Shown here one piece after another: positions 1 through 51,477 of a stretch of 64,000 nucleotides of DNA. Location: the sequence record KU686213.1; one strand, given 5' to 3'. Numbering within the stretch: position 1 is the first letter of the stretch; each line of letters begins with the position of its first letter. The notes below the pieces were generated by a model that did not search any database, was not told the DNA's origin, and saw nothing but the letters and a program-made list of their open reading frames with translations. The position numbers were made by a program, and so were the translations under genes.

Positions 1-5
1 CTCAA

Positions 6-320
6 ATGCGCAAGATTGAAATCCAAATGAACCGCGCTGTTCAGTCTGGCACCAATTTCAGCCAAGCTAACACCTCAGTTCATCATCACGAGGGCGTAGC
101 AATTGTCCGCCTACACGGTAGCAAGATCGCTGAGGTAGGCGACGATTTCATCACTCTCTTCGATGGTGGCTTCCAATCCAATACTACCAAGAGCCGCCTC
201 AATGCCTTGATGGCTGAGTTCTGCTCACCCGGTGAGAACGTATTCCAGAAAGCTTACCAGTGGTTCATTCGCGCTAACGGCGTCACCATCCCATTTGAGT
301 CAGGTGTGACACTCCGCTAA
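6..320 (+). CDS. Hypothetical early protein (104 aa) of a type common in cyanophage hypervariable regions
   Basis: Clean ORF; its start context CTCAAATG is identical to the end of the cassette before ORF 1040, suggesting another cassette just upstream of the window. Confidence 0.75.
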   Translation: MRKIEIQMNRAVQSGTNFSQANTSVHHHEGVAIVRLHGSKIAEVGDDFITLFDGGFQSNTTKSRLNALMAEFCSPGENVFQKAYQWFIRANGVTIPFESGVTLR

Positions 321-321
321 A

Positions 322-387
322 CTGGCACACGCTCCCTAGCGGGAGCTCCCCCAGCTGCTACAATTGATTCATACCAAAGGAACCACA
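322..387 (+). promoter_or_regulatory. Early cassette copy 1: TGGCAC box, hairpin GCTCCC-TAGC-GGGAGC, -10 TACAAT (359-364), leader ATTCATACCAAA, RBS
   Basis: Shares GCTGCTACAATTGATTCATACCAAA with copies 2 and 3. Confidence 0.8.
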
Positions 388-957
388 ATGAACACCTTTC
401 TGACCTCCTCATTCCAAAACGTTCGCTCTTCAAAGCGTACTGACGAACTCCACACCGTCTTGCTAGCTGAGGTACTGGAAGCTAACCCCCAGTGGGCAGG
501 CTACGACTGGCAGTTCGAATACCGCCTTCCCGTTGACGGCTTCGGTGGAACCTTTGATATTGATATCGCCGGTTTCGTCAACGGTGAGCTGAAGGTGGCT
601 GTCCTGGCTAAGGCAATGAACTCAAACGTCAATAAGAATATCAAAAACTACGCTAACACCACCATTGGCGAAGCTGCCCGTCTGACCTATGCCCCTGGCT
701 TAGACCTCGAGGCTGTGCTCTTCGTTTCAGTCCTTCCCCGCACTGCCCCCCGCTTCAATAAGGCAGGCGAGGTTGTGGGACTTGACAACGTGCTAAGCGC
801 TAAGGCTCGCACCAACATCGGCAATATCATCGAAGCTCAGTACGGTGGGCTGGTTCAGGTCATCGACCTATTCTTCGATATCGACAATATCTCAGAGATG
901 CTGACCTCTGCCGACTTTCAAACTATCACCGTATCGAACGTCGATAAGGTGAGCTAA
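388..957 (+). CDS. Putative PD-(D/E)XK / restriction-endonuclease-like protein (189 aa from ATG 388)
   Basis: ORF; acidic/lysine pattern E..L..D.FGG.FDIDI...AK; ATG 388 follows the cassette RBS (track start 364 lies inside the promoter). Confidence 0.5.
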   Translation: MNTFLTSSFQNVRSSKRTDELHTVLLAEVLEANPQWAGYDWQFEYRLPVDGFGGTFDIDIAGFVNGELKVAVLAKAMNSNVNKNIKNYANTTIGEAARLTYAPGLDLEAVLFVSVLPRTAPRFNKAGEVVGLDNVLSAKARTNIGNIIEAQYGGLVQVIDLFFDIDNISEMLTSADFQTITVSNVDKVS

Positions 958-1039
958 GCCAATTGAGCCACTGGCACAAGGGAGCGGCACAGCTCCCCCC
1001 AGCTGCTACAATTGATTCATACCAAACAAAGGAACTCAA
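958..1039 (+). promoter_or_regulatory. Early cassette copy 2: GCCA-N10-TGGC palindrome, hairpin GGGAGC-GGCACA-GCTCCC, -10 TACAAT (1007-1012), leader, RBS
   Basis: Direct repeat of copies 1 and 3. Confidence 0.8.
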
Positions 1040-1318
1040 ATGAAAATCTCACTCGATCAGCAAGTCGCTCAACTCGCAGCCGAAGGTCATCAAGAGATTG
1101 CAGTCATCAAACTCCCTAGTCAGGCAACCCGCAAGCGTCGCAAGCCTAGCAAGCGTCGCACTACCTCTACGAATGCGGTCAGCCAAACTGCCTACACTCA
1201 AACCGAGAGCCGCAACCTAGGCAAGATCAATTCAGCCTATGCGCGTCAGCATAGTGCCGATAGGAGGGCAGCAGCTCAACAGCGAGCAGCCGAGCTTAAA
1301 GGTCAGCCAATCTTCTAA
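1040..1318 (+). CDS. Hypothetical basic (Arg/Lys-rich) early protein, 92 aa
   Basis: ORF with RBS AAAGGA from the cassette; RKRRKPSKRR stretch. Confidence 0.75.
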   Translation: MKISLDQQVAQLAAEGHQEIAVIKLPSQATRKRRKPSKRRTTSTNAVSQTAYTQTESRNLGKINSAYARQHSADRRAAAQQRAAELKGQPIF

Positions 1319-1388
1319 GAGGCACAAGGGGGCTAGGCAAGCCCCCACCAGCTGCTACAATTGATTCATACCAAACAAGGAACCCACA
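1306..1388 (+). promoter_or_regulatory. Early cassette copy 3: hairpin GGGGGCT-AGGCA-AGCCCCC, -10 TACAAT (1356-1361), leader, RBS
   Basis: Direct repeat of copies 1 and 2. Confidence 0.8.
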
Positions 1389-1835
1389 ATGGCTACTCTC
1401 AACTATTCACCCGCTCAGCAGACTCAACTCATTGAGTTCTATCAGCAATGGCTGCCTAGAGTCAATGCCTTCGGATACGACAATCTCCCCGACGGTTATC
1501 ACACATACTACCGCCACGGCAAGAAGCTGGCTAAGGCAGCAGCAGCCGCTAAGATAGTCGAAGCTAAAGCAGCGCGTCGTCGTGGCAATCCATACCTCCG
1601 TCCCGAAGTTGAATTTATTGTGCATAGCTACGTTCGGACCGATAGTCCTTCTATCGTTGCCGACGAATTTAAGGCAGCTTTTATCGACTCTCCCCATAGT
1701 CGCGAGAGCGTCCGCTCTTGTGCTGGGCAGCTTCGCTCATTAGACAACCTCTGCCCCGACGATACGGGCTGGACTGTAAAAAGCCTAGTCGCAGAAGTAG
1801 CTAGCGAATTATACCCCGAGCGCTTCGCCGCATGA
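1389..1835 (+). CDS. Hypothetical early protein, 148 aa
   Basis: ORF directly after the cassette RBS. Confidence 0.75.
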   Translation: MATLNYSPAQQTQLIEFYQQWLPRVNAFGYDNLPDGYHTYYRHGKKLAKAAAAAKIVEAKAARRRGNPYLRPEVEFIVHSYVRTDSPSIVADEFKAAFIDSPHSRESVRSCAGQLRSLDNLCPDDTGWTVKSLVAEVASELYPERFAA

Positions 1836-1841
1836 TTCTAT

Positions 1842-1906
1842 CAAGGGGCTAGCCACCTAGCCCCGATCTATGGTACAATTCATTCATACCAAACCAGGAA
1901 CCGACA
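1842..1906 (+). promoter_or_regulatory. Early cassette copy 4: perfect hairpin GGGGCTAG-CCAC-CTAGCCCC, -10 TACAAT (1874-1879), leader, RBS
   Basis: TATGGTACAATTCATTCATACCAAAC-CAGGAACC matches the other copies. Confidence 0.8.
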
Positions 1907-2125
1907 ATGCCTTTCTCACCTGCCTGCCGCCTTTCAGACCAGACCCGTGTATGGGTTGAGCGCTCAATCTATGAAGGGTGCGATTGGCAAATCGAAAAGC
2001 ACTTTGGACCAGCACAAGGGCAAGACGCCCAGACCATTGCCGCTCGCTTCGCTGCTACGTATTCAGAGGAGGGCAAGACGATGAGCCTAGCTAACCCCTG
2101 CAGCGGAATCAGAGCCGAAGATTGA
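1907..2125 (+). CDS. Hypothetical early protein, 72 aa
   Basis: ORF between cassette copies 4 and 5. Confidence 0.7.
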   Translation: MPFSPACRLSDQTRVWVERSIYEGCDWQIEKHFGPAQGQDAQTIAARFAATYSEEGKTMSLANPCSGIRAED

Positions 2126-2195
2126 CCAGCCAAGGGGGTTGACGGATCAGCCCCCTCTATGGTCTACAATTCTTACATACCAAACAAGGGAACCG
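2123..2195 (+). promoter_or_regulatory. Early cassette copy 5: hairpin GGGGGTTGA-CGGA-TCAGCCCCC containing -35 TTGACG (2139-2144), -10 TACAAT (2165-2170), leader, RBS AAGGGA
   Basis: Near-identical to copies 6 and 7. Confidence 0.85.
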
Positions 2196-2339
2196 ATGAA
2201 CGCCAAAATCTACATAGCATCGATGACCATTGGCTTCACGCTCTCCACCCTAGCCATTGTATTTGGGGCTATGTCCTTGGACTTCCAAGAGCCTTCGGCA
2301 GCAACCCCAGTTGCTCAAATCACCTGCCAAGGGGGTTGA
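2196..2339 (+). CDS. Small early membrane protein, 47 aa
   Basis: ATG 2196 after the RBS; hydrophobic N-terminal helix IYIASMTIGFTLSTLAIVFGAM; stop TGA lies inside the TTGAC of the next cassette. Confidence 0.65.
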   Translation: MNAKIYIASMTIGFTLSTLAIVFGAMSLDFQEPSAATPVAQITCQGG

Positions 2340-2390
2340 CGGATCAGCCCTCTATGGTCTACAATTCATTCATACCAAACAAGGGAACCG
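2325..2390 (+). promoter_or_regulatory. Early cassette copy 6: -35 TTGACG (2336-2341), -10 TACAAT (2360-2365), leader, RBS
   Basis: Near-identical to copies 5 and 7. Confidence 0.85.
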
Positions 2391-2597
2391 ATGACGACTC
2401 TTCACTCTATCGAAAATCTCACAGCCGAGCTCGACCGCCTAGAGGGAATCAAGAATCGCCTAGCAGGGCTGATCGTAGACCTTAAGCTCACCAACCCAGA
2501 CTCACTATTCATCGGACTCTATCAGGACCGCCTCAAGTTCAATGTTCTCCCCGCCATCAAACTCACCAAGGGCTACATTCTCAAGACCAGCAACTGA
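2391..2597 (+). CDS. Hypothetical early protein, 68 aa
   Basis: ORF between cassette copies 6 and 7. Confidence 0.7.
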   Translation: MTTLHSIENLTAELDRLEGIKNRLAGLIVDLKLTNPDSLFIGLYQDRLKFNVLPAIKLTKGYILKTSN

Positions 2598-2667
2598 CCA
2601 GCCAAGGGGGTTGACGGATCAGCCCCCTATGGTCTACAATTCATTCATACCAAACAAGGCAACCCAA
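2595..2667 (+). promoter_or_regulatory. Early cassette copy 7: -35 TTGACG (2611-2616), -10 TACAAT (2635-2640), leader, RBS
   Basis: Near-identical to copies 5 and 6. Confidence 0.85.
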
Positions 2668-2760
2668 ATGGACCCCATCTCATTCGCAATCGGTATGGTC
2701 GGCGCAGCTCTGGTCGGTATCGTCAACGCCGAGCTGATCAAAGCAAACAACAAAGATTGA
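2668..2760 (+). CDS. Small hydrophobic early peptide, 30 aa (MDPISFAIGMVGAALVGIVNAELIKANNKD)
   Basis: ATG 2668 after the cassette RBS; one predicted TM helix. Confidence 0.6.
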   Translation: MDPISFAIGMVGAALVGIVNAELIKANNKD

Positions 2761-2800
2761 TCAGCCCAGCTCATCCCACTCAATCAAAACTTTTTTTCAA

Positions 2801-3025
2801 ATGACTCCTTCCATCTTTATCGACACTGAGAACAGCTCAACAGCCGTTGATGCCATCGTGCTCACCCCCCGTAGAGTTCAGTTCGCTTGGGCGTCTGGTT
2901 CCGTCTCCGCTCACACCGTCCGCCTCCGCGATCAAGTGAGATTCTACATCCGCCACTTGATGCTCGATGAGGAGCTGAGCTATGGTGCTTGGTCCAACTG
3001 GGTGCTCGATAATCAAATCCTCTGA
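2801..3025 (+). CDS. Hypothetical early protein, 74 aa
   Basis: ORF; no cassette of its own, probably co-transcribed with 2668-2760. Confidence 0.65.
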   Translation: MTPSIFIDTENSSTAVDAIVLTPRRVQFAWASGSVSAHTVRLRDQVRFYIRHLMLDEELSYGAWSNWVLDNQIL

Positions 3026-3081
3026 CCCCTAGGCATCCTGCCCAATCCGTGCTACAATTCACTCAAGTCAATCAACCGACA
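3024..3081 (+). promoter_or_regulatory. Degenerate early cassette copy 8: -35 TAGGCA (3030-3035), 17-nt spacer, -10 TACAAT (3053-3058)
   Basis: GTGCTACAATTCA similar to the other copies; hairpin weak or absent. Confidence 0.6.
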
Positions 3082-3270
3082 ATGCTCAACATCACAGCCG
3101 ACCAGAATGGAACCATCTCTTGGCAAGAGGCTCTCCGCTTCGTGAATGAGGCAGCAGCTGATCAGCGCAACTTCCTCATCCGTGATTTCTTACAGTCTGC
3201 TTACGCTGGATTGAGAGGAGAGAGAATCGACCTAGGTGAGCTCAACGTCTGGATCACAGAGAACAGCTGA
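3082..3270 (+). CDS. Hypothetical early protein, 62 aa
   Basis: ATG 3082 in context AACCGACAATG, as in copy 4. Confidence 0.65.
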   Translation: MLNITADQNGTISWQEALRFVNEAAADQRNFLIRDFLQSAYAGLRGERIDLGELNVWITENS

Positions 3271-3278
3271 ATCACACA

Positions 3279-3302
3279 GCCTCCCGCAAGGGGGGCTTTT
3301 TT
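3279..3302 (+). terminator. Rho-independent terminator closing the early array
   Basis: GCCTCCC-GCAA-GGGGGGC followed by T6. Confidence 0.85.
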
Positions 3303-3565
3303 AATGCGTGCGTATCGACAGTACTCGTTCGTGATAGGACAGTGCTATCCATTCGTGCGTTGAGGACAGTGGTATGGCGTTGCGATCCATTGGGGGGTGG
3401 CGGCGTTACCTTCGTATATAAAAAGTACCTTCTATCTAAGCTATAAAAGTAAAGATCGACCTATACTTATCGCTATTTAAAAAATTCTCCCAGATATTCT
3501 ATGGACCACAGAGTTGGCTCAGAGTTGTCTCTATATTATACCACACTTCTTAAATATCCCCCCAT

Positions 3566-3600
3566 AAAAAAATCCCCCAGGTATTCAATGCCCCTAGGAG
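3566..3600 (-). terminator. Minus-strand intrinsic terminator
   Basis: On the minus strand CUCCUAGG/CCUGGGGG 8-bp stem (G-U pairs), 11-nt loop, then A-U7. Confidence 0.55.
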
Positions 3601-3708
3601 ATGATTATTATTAACTTGATAACATTCGCTTATCTCTGTGTAATCCCTCTACACAGAAGTATTGCGTATATCTTCAATAAGTACTTAAAGTGTCTTATCA
3701 ACCTCAAC
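3566..3708 (-). ncRNA. Candidate ~140-nt structured sRNA or primer RNA
   Basis: Bounded by a consensus sigma70 promoter and a terminator; stems TCTGTGTA/TACACAGA (3635-3657) and TTGATAA/TTATCAA (3616-3622/3695-3701); no convincing ORF. Confidence 0.45.
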
Positions 3709-3714
3709 AAGGCT
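3678..3714. repeat. 37-bp block, copy A (copy B at 51441-51477, 1 mismatch)
   Basis: TAAGTACTTAAAGTGTCTTATCAACCTC(A/G)ACAAGGCT read directly at both loci. Confidence 0.95.
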
Positions 3715-3743
3715 ATTCTACAAGTATCTCCGTGTGTTGTCAA
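3715..3743 (-). promoter_or_regulatory. Minus-strand sigma70 promoter TTGACA-N17-TAGAAT
   Basis: TGTCAA at 3738-3743, ATTCTA at 3715-3720, 17-nt spacer. Confidence 0.8.
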
Positions 3744-3870
3744 GCCCCCATCAAGAGTATCCCTTTAAGTATCTCAACCATCCCCTGACAAACTGCACAA
3801 GGCTATTTAGAGAGTCATAAAAGAAGTATTTTCATTGAGATGCCGTAGGCACACACCGTAGGTGTGTTAG

Positions 3871-3930
3871 TAGAGATACTTAAAGAACCATAGAGAATCT
3901 TAGAGAAACATAGAGGACCGCAGAGAGCGC
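3871..3930 (+). repeat. Six in-phase decamers, consensus TAGAGAANC(A/T)
   Basis: TAGAGATACT TAAAGAACCA TAGAGAATCT TAGAGAAACA TAGAGGACCG CAGAGAGCGC, exact 10-bp period. Confidence 0.8.
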
Positions 3931-4069
3931 GAAAAATCCCCCTCTCAAGTTATCTCCGAAGAGAGTATTACAGAGAGGGTTATACTATTACTAAGGAATA
4001 CCCATATACTCTACAACTCACTCCGAAGGGTATAGAAGAGCTTAGTGGTCAGGGGGGAAATATGCTGTG

Positions 4070-4077
4070 TATAAATA
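4070..4077 (+). promoter_or_regulatory. T4-type late promoter TATAAATA with no protein gene behind it
   Basis: Exact gp55 consensus. Confidence 0.65.
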
Positions 4078-4081
4078 GAAG

Positions 4082-4232
4082 TGGAATACAAGCCTAGGAG
4101 CGTCTCTAATAGGCTCTCATCCTACGGGGGATAGAGACACTCCGAGTTCCATTGAGGCTCCCCACAAAGGCATTTAGAGTACGTAGAAGAACATATAGTA
4201 ACGTAGAGGTCCATAGAGGTCCTCTTTTTTTA
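4082..4232 (+). ncRNA. Candidate late structured sRNA
   Basis: Late promoter upstream; stem GGAG-C-GTCTCTA/TAGAGAC-A-CTCC (4097-4143); terminator-like GAGGTCC/GGTCCTC plus T7 at 4205-4232. Confidence 0.35.
4175..4223 (+). repeat. Second phased TAGAG array (5 units, 9-10 bp period)
   Basis: TAGAGTACG TAGAAGAACA TATAGTAACG TAGAGGTCCA TAGAGGTCCT. Confidence 0.65.
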
Positions 4233-4283
4233 TGGGCGAACCCTTTTTATGACCCTAGGGGGCAAGCCCCCACAATGAGGACC

Positions 4284-4314
4284 CATAAATACCAATAGAG
4301 AATATTAACTTATT
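4284..4314 (+). promoter_or_regulatory. Late promoter plus leader, repeated before each of the three paralogs (also 5029-5059 and 5783-5813)
   Basis: (C/T)ATAAATAC(C/T)AATAGA(G/A)AATA(T/C)TAACTTATTATG in all three. Confidence 0.85.
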
Positions 4315-5028
4315 ATGGCAGTTAACATAAGCGGTAATGGAGCTATTGAGGGTATTACTTCTTTTAATGGGGAGGATATTGCTTCTTTTAATGAGGGAGG
4401 TCCTACTTTCCGCAATATACTCTTTAATGGTTGGGTGAACACCAGTATTGGAATAAACCAACGTGGCAAAACAATAGCTCAAGTTTCTAATGGGGAATAT
4501 TGGGCTGATAGGTGGCAACGTGTTTCATCCACAACTATGACCCAGAAGGTTGAAGGGGGTAACTATATACCAAATAGGACATATACGTTATCTGGTAATA
4601 ATGTAACAACAACACAAATCACATCCCCTGCTAGTGGAACTTGGGATTGGGGTACTGTGCCCTCCAATGCGTCATTGGTTCAGTTGGAGCTAGGTGATAC
4701 TGCATCTTCTTTTGAATATAGACCCTATGGGTTGGAAGTAATTTTGTGTCAGAGGTATTATGAAGTTGTTGATTGTGAATATGGTACAACCGCAGTACTT
4801 GATGCGGGGAATTCGAATAAAGCTATAAAAAAACCTTGGATATATAAAGTTAGTAAAAGAATTATACCAACCGCTATTGTAACTGCTCAAAGTGGTGCTT
4901 ATTCTACCAATGCTAGTGTGAGTGGAATACGAAGTTCTTTTTGCAATCTCAATTGGCAATGGCAACAGACATCTGGAAATTTTGATAGGACCAAGGCTGC
5001 TGTAGTTAACGTCGATGCCGAACTATAA
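4315..5028 (+). CDS. Putative virion or fibre-tip protein, paralog 1 (237 aa)
   Basis: FRN..NG..INQRG..Y.ADRW and QLE.G..AS.FE.R...LCQRYY motifs of a type common in cyanophage fibre-associated proteins; late promoter. Confidence 0.75.
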   Translation: MAVNISGNGAIEGITSFNGEDIASFNEGGPTFRNILFNGWVNTSIGINQRGKTIAQVSNGEYWADRWQRVSSTTMTQKVEGGNYIPNRTYTLSGNNVTTTQITSPASGTWDWGTVPSNASLVQLELGDTASSFEYRPYGLEVILCQRYYEVVDCEYGTTAVLDAGNSNKAIKKPWIYKVSKRIIPTAIVTAQSGAYSTNASVSGIRSSFCNLNWQWQQTSGNFDRTKAAVVNVDAEL

Positions 5029-6817: not shown

Positions 6818-6952
6818 ATGTTCGGCAAGACACAGGAAAAAATCGAAAAGGCTGGAAAAAAGACCCGTCAGGGTCGTTCCAACCGCACGAAACTCTCTGC
6901 AACTTCCGCGAGACCTAGGCAAAAGCGTTATCGTGGTCAAGGAAGGAGCTGA
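6818..6952 (+). CDS. Small basic protein, 44 aa (KKTRQG...KRYRGQG type)
   Basis: RBS AAGGAG at ~6807; motif recognised from cyanophage genomes. Confidence 0.7.
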   Translation: MFGKTQEKIEKAGKKTRQGRSNRTKLSATSARPRQKRYRGQGRS

Positions 6953-50997: not shown

Positions 50998-51423
50998 ATG
51001 ACTGATAAGAAGATAGCATCTATTAAACTAGTATCGGGTGAAGAAGTTGTATGTACATTACTGAGTATTGAAAAGGATGGTTCTTATACAATCTTATCTT
51101 TTACCAATCCATTAAGAATACAATTACGGGATAGAAGGAGGAACAAAAGGTATTCATTAGAGCCTTGGTTGTGTCTTAAAAATGATACGATTCATTGTAT
51201 TGATGTTACTAAAATTATTACAGTAAATGAAATTACTGATGAGGATGTTCTTAGTGACTATAACTCATACTACAGGAAAAAGATTAACTTAATGCCTAAA
51301 CCTAAAAGGGAGATATCAACTTCTAATAAAATAGGTTATGTAGGTAATACAAAAGACTTTAAAGATGTTCTAGAAAAACTCTATAGAGATACTGATTCAT
51401 ATGAGAAGCCAACTGACGTATAA
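50998..51423 (+). CDS. Conserved hypothetical protein (Sm-like N-terminus), 141 aa
   Basis: ASIKLVSGEEV; usual position between uvsW and g55. Confidence 0.75.
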   Translation: MTDKKIASIKLVSGEEVVCTLLSIEKDGSYTILSFTNPLRIQLRDRRRNKRYSLEPWLCLKNDTIHCIDVTKIITVNEITDEDVLSDYNSYYRKKINLMPKPKREISTSNKIGYVGNTKDFKDVLEKLYRDTDSYEKPTDV

Positions 51424-51440
51424 GTATCTCTATGTCTCTC

Positions 51441-51477
51441 TAAGTACTTAAAGTGTCTTATCAACCTCGACAAGGCT
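51441..51477. repeat. 37-bp block, copy B (copy A at 3678-3714)
   Basis: Direct sequence identity, 36/37. Confidence 0.95.

Follow-up and report, generated by a model that had tools for sequence, protein, structure and literature searches.

Phased TAGAG arrays in a conserved non-coding gap of cyanophage S-CAM7 as putative sites for a sequence-specific binding protein

Two arrays of a short TAGAG-type repeat in helical register lie in a gene-free gap of about 1 kb in the genome of Synechococcus phage S-CAM7, a 214-kb T4-like cyanomyovirus (Kyanoviridae, Mazuvirus) whose + strand holds nearly all genes. The stretch of 64,000 nucleotides analyzed here (the window) is identical to positions 62001-126000 of the record of isolate 0910SB42 (KU686213.1), and positions below are those of the window unless they are given as genome positions. 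The genome has no other phased arrays outside coding sequence, local composition would not predict the two, and they recur at matching places in environmental relatives of the phage. We favor the interpretation, to which we give a probability of about 0.4, that the arrays are head-to-tail DNA sites for a putative sequence-specific protein and belong to a regulatory hub at the boundary between early and late genes.

Phased arrays and their conservation

The original prediction, made from the letters of the window, described six decamers in exact 10-bp phase and five more units a short distance downstream, and both arrays were verified on the sequence (Table 1), the second with a first spacing of 9 bp and all others of 10 bp. 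An exact TAGAG is present in four of the six units of array 1, the second unit being TAAAG and the sixth CAGAG, and Tandem Repeats Finder independently detects both arrays. The frequency of TAGAG is ~1.5 per kb on each strand of the genome; the 10 copies in ~490 bp here are its densest cluster, and a scan of both strands of the whole genome found no other chain of at least four phased units with at least three of them exact. When sequences were simulated with Markov models of first, second and third order trained on the gap, chains of five or more units, three of them exact, arose in 0, 0 and 1 of 5000 runs, respectively, so that the proposed check of the periodicity against local composition came out at no more than 1 in 5000. 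Because a guard was needed against a motif picked after sight, all 1024 pentamers were scanned in the same manner; phased chains of equal or greater length were found only in collagen-like coding repeats, at ~17 kb and at 173-177 kb of the genome.

Conservation in related sequences, the other check that had been proposed, was assessed by searching public collections with the leader sequence of the promoter cassettes described below and with the conserved central block between the arrays, which yielded uncultured marine phage contigs (L016, L021/L173, L022/L167, L032/L170, L168, L169, L171, L172, L175, L176 and L178). Ten homologous gaps, eight of them distinct, hold both arrays at matching places, at ~64% nucleotide identity over the gap and 66-91% identity of the flanking proteins. 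Every homologue whose contig reaches the arrays has them in place, with the exception of array 1 in L016, where an N6/N4 DNA methylase gene (L016:338-1348) stands in place of array 1 and the central block and array 2 is retained. The specified positions of the central block are exact in all homologues because the block served as a search pattern. The four S-CAM7 records are 96-99% identical over the gap and therefore too close to inform; the few array differences among isolates hit variable or tolerated positions.

In the relatives array 1 has between two and six units, always with a 10-bp period, and the invariant columns of the alignment recur every ten columns. In a weight matrix of 41 units, five positions are 94-97% conserved, namely 1 (T), 3 (G), 4 (A), 5 (G) and 9 (C); position 2 is divided evenly between A and T, and positions 6-8 and 10 vary. 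The calculated information is ~1.5-1.9 bits at positions 1, 3, 4, 5 and 9 and at most ~0.6 bits elsewhere. Array 2 in the relatives comprises three to six TAGAG, 9-12 bp apart with one longer gap of 18-24 bp, and its spacers are mutually unrelated. Overall, T[A/T]GAG occurs on the + strand in 8-12 copies per 530-bp homologue where 1.9 are expected (an enrichment of 4-6 fold) and in 5-9 copies in three truncated homologues, with Poisson P between 2e-3 and 6e-7. These patterns support the view that the arrays are under constraint that depends on both sequence and register.

Outside the genus, the cultured phages nearest to S-CAM7 are the ACG-2014f phages, whose syntenic gap has no arrays, and the element is therefore specific to the S-CAM7-like clade. 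That gap carries an HNH endonuclease, and the region is an insertion hot spot. Two further search strategies were abandoned: the downstream fibre-tip protein, used as a synteny anchor, found no relatives, and a scan of viral collections for three TAGAG units 10 bp apart returned more than 100 unrelated tandem repeats from many kinds of virus and was uninformative.

An improbable alternative is that the arrays are slippage-prone tandem repeats without function in a region conserved for other reasons. Otherwise near-identical contigs do differ by one whole unit of array 1 (two vs three), as slippage predicts; in favor of this alternative, too, one lineage has lost array 1, and the ACG-2014f phages have no arrays. 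Neutral repeats, however, would not drift at half of their ten positions and stay at 94-97% in the other half, nor would they be expected as two arrays at fixed places in ten homologues, the second of them with unrelated spacers; moreover, the 10-nt-spaced pair recurs behind unrelated promoter cassettes.

Candidate binding sites in DNA or RNA

Pairs of TAGAG at a spacing of exactly 10 nt are confined to four sites in the genome, namely the two arrays and two cassettes of host-type promoter and leader. The minus-strand pair of the first cassette, reported in the original prediction, is present with units at 51442 and 51432, the second being identical to the unit at 3871; the second cassette lies at genome position 208335 on the + strand. 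Each of the two cassettes has a near-palindrome of 16 bp made of two TARAG half-sites, the end of the leader supplying the left half and the first unit the right. This arrangement of a pair after the leader recurs in many of 26 environmental cassettes and, more loosely, in cyanophage S-RIM4. The halves of the near-palindrome vary independently and without compensation, which suggests that each half is read for its sequence and not for pairing.

Conservation of both core and register is what binding on one face of the helix predicts, and to that extent the comparison supports the original prediction, which had placed a cooperatively binding protein along one helix face; the origin, packaging and partition roles proposed along with it did not find support. 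In the interpretation that we favor, a unit would consist of ~7 adjacent bases that carry information (C-n-T-[A/T]-G-A-G) and three unconstrained ones after them, and the ~10-bp repeat would set successive protein molecules on the same helix face, where they may bind cooperatively. Both orientations of the motif are kept, with inverted copies at 3763-3778, in a module found also in relatives, and at 3942-3949 within the invariant block. The arrays and the inverted copies at 3763-3778 and 3944-3948 would carry a nucleoprotein complex over the right half of a conserved 1-kb control region, which has the early small-gene block on one side and the late baseplate module on the other. Such a complex would most likely control the antisense host-type promoter P_A, the late-type promoters of the gap and, via the two-unit versions, the cassettes elsewhere, and it may additionally mark a transcription-primed origin.

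A candidate for the binding protein is a 55-amino-acid protein with an AbrB/MazE fold, whose gene is the first after the gap in three relatives. Its model (pLDDT 78.5) matches the DNA-binding domains of MazE, AbrB, SpoVT and VapB in Foldseek with probabilities of 0.9-0.99 and TM-scores of ~0.6, the E-values being weak as expected for the size, and its Pfam MazE_antitoxin matches fall just under threshold. The protein is a candidate and not an assignment because the gene also adjoins the array-less gaps of ACG-2014f. Across ten proteins, comprising those of the flanking genes and the relocated AbrB/MazE-like one, no Pfam family scored above threshold and PHROGs returned only 'unknown function'. 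The binders named in the original prediction have no specific link to the arrays: the basic 44-amino-acid protein occurs in array-less ACG-2014f too, and the terminase genes are distant. A weak Pfam winged-helix match (E 0.058) in an 84-amino-acid open reading frame beside the gp55-side cassette was judged noise.

Several observations weigh against binding at the level of DNA. The enrichment of T[A/T]GAG is confined to the + strand, the minus strand being at background, and each cassette pair lies on the RNA-like strand, ~+37/+47 downstream of the transcription start, a position that a motif read in RNA would account for just as well. The exact 10-bp steps of array 1 are also expected from replication slippage alone, and array 1 is dispensable in L016, since a methylase gene has replaced it. 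The flanking genes gave no matches to DNA-binding families; the AbrB-like gene of S-CAM7, at genome 184219-184392, is 118 kb from the gap, and its counterpart also follows the ACG-2014f gap that has no arrays. Finally, one oligo-dT RNA library yielded short contigs over 3857-3950 and 4001-4127 and none over the flanking genes, and the region may therefore be transcribed, although the contigs are few, have a depth of ~3, carry no strand information and could derive from DNA carry-over.

Because of the one-strand enrichment and the RNA-like-strand position behind the cassettes, we rank a function in RNA nearly as likely as one in DNA, though still tentative. Here, + strand RNA of the right half of the gap, made from late-type promoters or by read-through, would present the repeated UWGAG as sites for an RNA-binding protein or as a CsrB-like sponge, and the short cassette RNAs would each have this site twice. 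In S-CAM7, formation of the terminator-like hairpin of array 2 could depend on such binding, by which the late baseplate operon would be gated. In keeping with this, the one-strand enrichment is strong in every homologue, and cassettes on either genome strand keep the motif RNA-like at ~+37/+47, including one at genome 208270-208380 that consists of a promoter, a 75-nt RNA and a terminator. Similarly, array 2 is preceded at ~100 nt by late-promoter-like octamers, its last two units fold into a hairpin with a T run behind it in S-CAM7 and L016, and the contigs of the oligo-dT library cover array 1 and the region ahead of array 2. On the other hand, no + strand promoter is evident upstream of array 1, the T run is not conserved in most relatives, and in a second RNA library the coverage is reversed, with contigs over the flanking genes and none over the gap. 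The helical-repeat spacing, moreover, is not required by RNA. No support for a conserved RNA structure came from the consensus fold of the + strand, computed between the arrays and through them (covariation term +0.49), and an S-CAM7 hairpin at 4094-4146 is not retained in relatives.

The closest RNA-level parallel is with the NAG-repeat systems of TRAP and HutP, which have periods of 5-7 nt. Like them, the arrays would offer repeats with UAG and GAG in a transcribed leader, where in S-CAM7 they would overlap a terminator-like hairpin; they differ in that the period is 10 nt and that the hairpin is found only in S-CAM7 and L016. We know of no TRAP- or HutP-like protein here.

Five further ideas were considered and set aside. 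A purine-rich R-loop would fit the purine-rich units of S-CAM7, but the common unit of the relatives is 50% purine. A cluster of methylation sites was dropped because GATC, present in many units of the relatives, is in none of those of S-CAM7. A Chi-like recombination signal was rejected, TAGAG being neither over-represented nor strand-skewed genome-wide (318 vs 299 copies). A link to late promoters was likewise dropped, since TAGAG stands beside the late-promoter octamer in only 2 of 40, both of them fibre-tip leaders. By inspection, none of the Pho-box, HLR1, NtcA and LexA sites fits the motif.

The most compact of the cassettes, at genome 208270-208385, comprises a promoter, an RNA of ~75 nt in which TAGAG occurs twice, and a strong terminator (fold z-score -4.5); directly after it come a late promoter and the glutaredoxin gene. 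Elsewhere, at genome 55249-55460, six copies of an extended motif CCATAGAG stand in steps of 9, 18 and 27 nt, ~100 nt downstream of another consensus host-type promoter; the annotation of that region holds two tiny minus-strand open reading frames only.

Setting and other elements of the gap

The gap (Table 1) corresponds to genome positions 65271-66314, where KU686213.1 has no feature, and holds no open reading frame of more than 55 amino acids. A block of small early-type genes, ~35 kb long, ends on its left, and on its right lies the first of three paralogous late fibre-tip genes, with its start codon at 4315; these are followed by a 53-amino-acid gene, a very basic 44-amino-acid gene, gp25 and gp6. 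Among the relatives the gap is always directly upstream of this module of the 53-amino-acid gene, the basic 44-amino-acid gene, gp25 and gp6, with zero to three genes inserted between, namely the three fibre-tip genes in S-CAM7 and an AbrB/MazE-like gene with two others in L170, L168, L016 and ACG-2014f; the gene upstream of the gap varies between lineages. The extremely basic 44-amino-acid protein (6818-6952; PHROG 516, function unknown), encoded in every case between the 53-amino-acid gene and gp25, shows 88-93% identity in most environmental relatives that were compared, and is found also in ACG-2014f.

The terminator that closes the early block is identical across three S-CAM7 isolates and present in relatives too, and the sole match of an Rfam search of the gap fell on it, far short of the threshold (18.6 bits; gathering score 47). 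In the last 6 kb of this block, which include positions 1-3300 of the window, G+C is 52% and GC skew negative, and the remainder of the genome has 36-42% G+C and a positive skew. Within this block (positions 1-3300) a cassette of hairpin, -10 element and leader is repeated ahead of each small gene. Variation among S-CAM7 isolates in the left half of the gap includes an 11-nt tandem repeat at 3509-3531, whose copy number differs among three isolates, and a 28-nt duplication in one isolate.

Promoters as strict as P_A number 11 in the genome, four of which have a common leader of ~37 nt. P_A points away from the arrays, which lie to its right and hence upstream of it. The leader of its predicted RNA occurs four times in the genome, and the RNA has a fold z-score of -2.7 and a terminator-like 3' hairpin. 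The whole unit (3565-3743, minus strand) resembles a small-RNA gene antisense to general transcription, and equivalent modules of promoter, leader and terminator are present in relatives.

Among the elements near array 1, the inverted repeat of the original prediction is real and longer than claimed, with 16 nt at 3763-3778 that are 94% complementary to 3870-3885, and the small hairpin at 3851-3867 folds as described; it is found in S-CAM7 and in one relative (L032/L170) only, other sequence taking its place in relatives of the L173 type. The pair of decamers reported at 3808-3827 stood in part: the first unit is an exact TAGAG, which overlaps a minus-strand late-promoter-like CTAAATA, and the second is weak, with two mismatches. 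Nearer to array 2, several relatives have a late-promoter-like octamer similar to TATAAATA ~100 nt further upstream in the alignment instead. The T run after array 2 is present also in L016 and not in relatives of the L173 type, and the G+C hairpin beyond it retains its stem in relatives with changed loop and stem letters. The leader with CATAAATA recurs ahead of all three paralogous fibre-tip genes.

Table 1. Positions of the arrays and of other elements in the window
Feature	Position	Strand	Remarks
Gene-free gap	3271-4314	.	1044 bp; contains the arrays and other elements
Intrinsic terminator closing the early small-gene block	3278-3303	+	8-pair stem, then T run
Predicted small non-coding RNA driven by P_A	3565-3709	-	~145 nt; 37-nt leader, strong hairpin, terminator with U run
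Host-type promoter P_A	3715-3743	-	TTGACA, 17 nt, TAGAAT; 11/12 consensus positions; points away from the arrays
Inverted copy of the first 1.5 units of array 1	3763-3778	-	TTGAG-type unit; 94% complementary to 3870-3885
Weak pair	3808-3827	+	Exact TAGAG and a two-mismatch unit; related to 4163-4179
Small hairpin before array 1	3851-3867	+	7-bp stem
Array 1	3871-3930	+	Six units at a strict 10-bp period; consensus T-[A/T]-G-A-G-n-n-n-C-n
Most conserved block of the gap, between the arrays	3942-3975	+	Starts with inverted TTGAG (CTCAA on +) facing array 1
T4-type late-promoter-like octamer TATAAATA	4070-4077	+	~100 nt upstream of array 2, in an S-CAM7-specific insert
Array 2	4175-4223	+	Five units at 4175, 4184, 4194, 4204, 4214; spacing 9/10/10/10; three exact
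Terminator-like hairpin and T run	4205-4231	+	Made of the last two units of array 2; from folding
Conserved G+C hairpin	4258-4271	+	Ahead of the late promoter of the downstream genes; from the sequence
Late-promoter-like CATAAATA and single TAGAG	4284-4300	+	Leader of the first fibre-tip gene; octamer at 4284-4291
Two TAGAG decamers 10 nt apart	51423-51442	-	~+37/+47 of a cassette facing away from the late sigma-factor gene

Origin, packaging and known repeat systems

The geometry of the arrays also invites the reading that the region is a replication origin, with the arrays serving as initiator iterons or organizing an R-loop origin primed by the antisense promoter P_A, in the manner of T4 oriE. 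We consider this unlikely. As in iteron origins, which have at least three direct repeats in helical register, there are six and five units at 9-10 bp (two to six in relatives), and as in T4 oriE, an early host-type promoter, P_A, lies antisense to late genes beside baseplate genes. The setting, a large conserved non-coding region with evenly spaced direct repeats beside an early-type promoter that fires against general transcription, is likewise suggestive, and the gap is directly upstream of the baseplate module just as T4 oriE lies in the baseplate gene cluster. In addition, GC skew switches from -0.14 to +0.16 exactly at the gap. The switch, however, coincides with the 6-kb block of differing composition, and genome-wide skew follows transcription; skew is not diagnostic here because these two influences dominate it.

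Other expected parts of an origin were sought in and around the gap. No AT-rich unwinding element adjoins the arrays, the 40-bp AT content beside them being 45-70%, and the AT maximum of the gap (77.5% over 40 bp) is 450 bp away and ranks only in the top 1.5% of the genome. The gap contains no TTTTCCACA DnaA box within one mismatch and just a single TTATCCACA-type site, at one mismatch, and the S-CAM7 genome has no DnaA-box cluster anywhere. No initiator-like gene was found beside the gap with Pfam and PHROGs, a tblastn search of the whole S-CAM7 genome for RepEA and RepEB gave chance matches only (E >3), and L016 does without array 1. On these grounds the origin role of the original prediction is not upheld. 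A cluster of DnaA boxes does occur in S-RIM4 (MK493321.1), where 130 bp (L154:941-1067) hold three exact and two one-mismatch boxes of the cyanobacterial type (TTTTCCACA). The cluster lies 140-260 bp upstream of a cassette of promoter, leader and TAGAG that is related to those of S-CAM7, a proximity that counts in favor of an origin, and the S-RIM4 region may be a DnaA-dependent origin or control region.

The other roles in the original prediction, a packaging (pac) site for the small terminase or a partition site, are very improbable. Repeat geometry is what speaks for them, since phased short repeats occur in some pac sites, such as those of SPP1 and P1. Against this, the terminase genes are 31 kb away, with the small-subunit gene 31.4 kb downstream, and the adjacent genes include none that is ParB-like or terminase-like. 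Packaging in T4-like phages is by headful and uses no unique pac site, and partition is not needed by a lytic phage of this type, so that a partition site has no place in it.

Among known systems, T4 oriE resembles the region in outline. It produces an early antisense primer RNA and has evenly spaced direct repeats that are conserved in the syntenic regions of relatives and whose role is undefined (PMC3016281), and the T4 annotation places its early promoter antisense to the late baseplate gene 5. Shared with S-CAM7 are the position in the baseplate cluster, the early host-type antisense promoter and the evenly spaced conserved repeats. The T4 repeats, by contrast, are within gene 5 and the cyanophage arrays are non-coding, and S-CAM7 has no homologue of RepEA or RepEB. 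Near the 3' end of gene 5, the T4 'iterons' fall on a tandem repeat of 24 nt, or eight codons (L180:4427-4558), which we take to encode the gp5 beta-helix. This overlap with a coding repeat may be why they were never tied to origin activity, and it counts against an origin in S-CAM7.

The iteron arrays of plasmids and phages (R6K gamma origin, P1) resemble the S-CAM7 arrays in having several direct repeats in helical register, with variable copy number, in non-coding DNA, and differ in that their units are 17-22 bp, not 10 bp, and are accompanied by an adjacent initiator, an unwinding element and DnaA boxes. Also comparable are operators of short direct repeats, spaced at ~10 bp and bound by oligomeric regulators, such as MraZ boxes, the tandem sites of OmpR/PhoB-type regulators and the heptads of the omega repressor, in which a core of 5-7 bp is repeated head-to-tail on one helix face and also occurs inverted. 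Oligomers of MraZ, which has an AbrB-type fold, bind series of short direct repeats (PMC8475190), and a gene for a protein of the AbrB/MazE fold adjoins the gap in three relatives. The S-CAM7 motif matches none of these, however, and the arrays, of up to six units, stand 130-190 bp from the nearest strong promoter and not over a promoter. Finally, the PeSL cassettes of T4-like phages, in which an early promoter and a stem-loop are repeated through a variable region (PMC4122927), are matched by the promoter/leader and small-gene cassettes of S-CAM7, which have near-consensus host-type promoters with stem-loops. The arrays themselves hold no promoter and are absent from the ~20 small-gene cassettes, so that only the neighboring cassettes fit this type. 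Taken together, the element is best described as putative binding arrays of phased short repeats, of a known general type and specific to the S-CAM7-like clade; full-text searches of the literature found no iteron-like repeats or origins of cyanophages and nothing on the S-CAM7 gap.

T4-like cyanophages rank with the most abundant viruses that infect the main photosynthesizers of the ocean, yet to our knowledge almost nothing is known of where their replication starts or how they switch from early to late expression, the latter being obscure because they lack the middle-mode regulators of T4. An ambitious extension of the interpretation that we favor, which we regard as rather unlikely, is that the arrays, the central block and the antisense early promoter constitute a dedicated nucleoprotein hub, which would give T4-like cyanophages their first replication origin, or early-to-late switch, defined by sequence. 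A phage protein that recognizes T[A/T]GAG in 10-bp register would read it, and the two-unit copies would be part of the circuit. A conserved 1-kb non-coding region at the early/late boundary, with a motif that also stands behind the strongest host-type promoters, offers a concrete experimental handle. The arrays may turn out to be a clade-specific regulatory detail, but if the factor that reads them is an initiator or a global regulator of early promoters, a long-standing gap would be filled.

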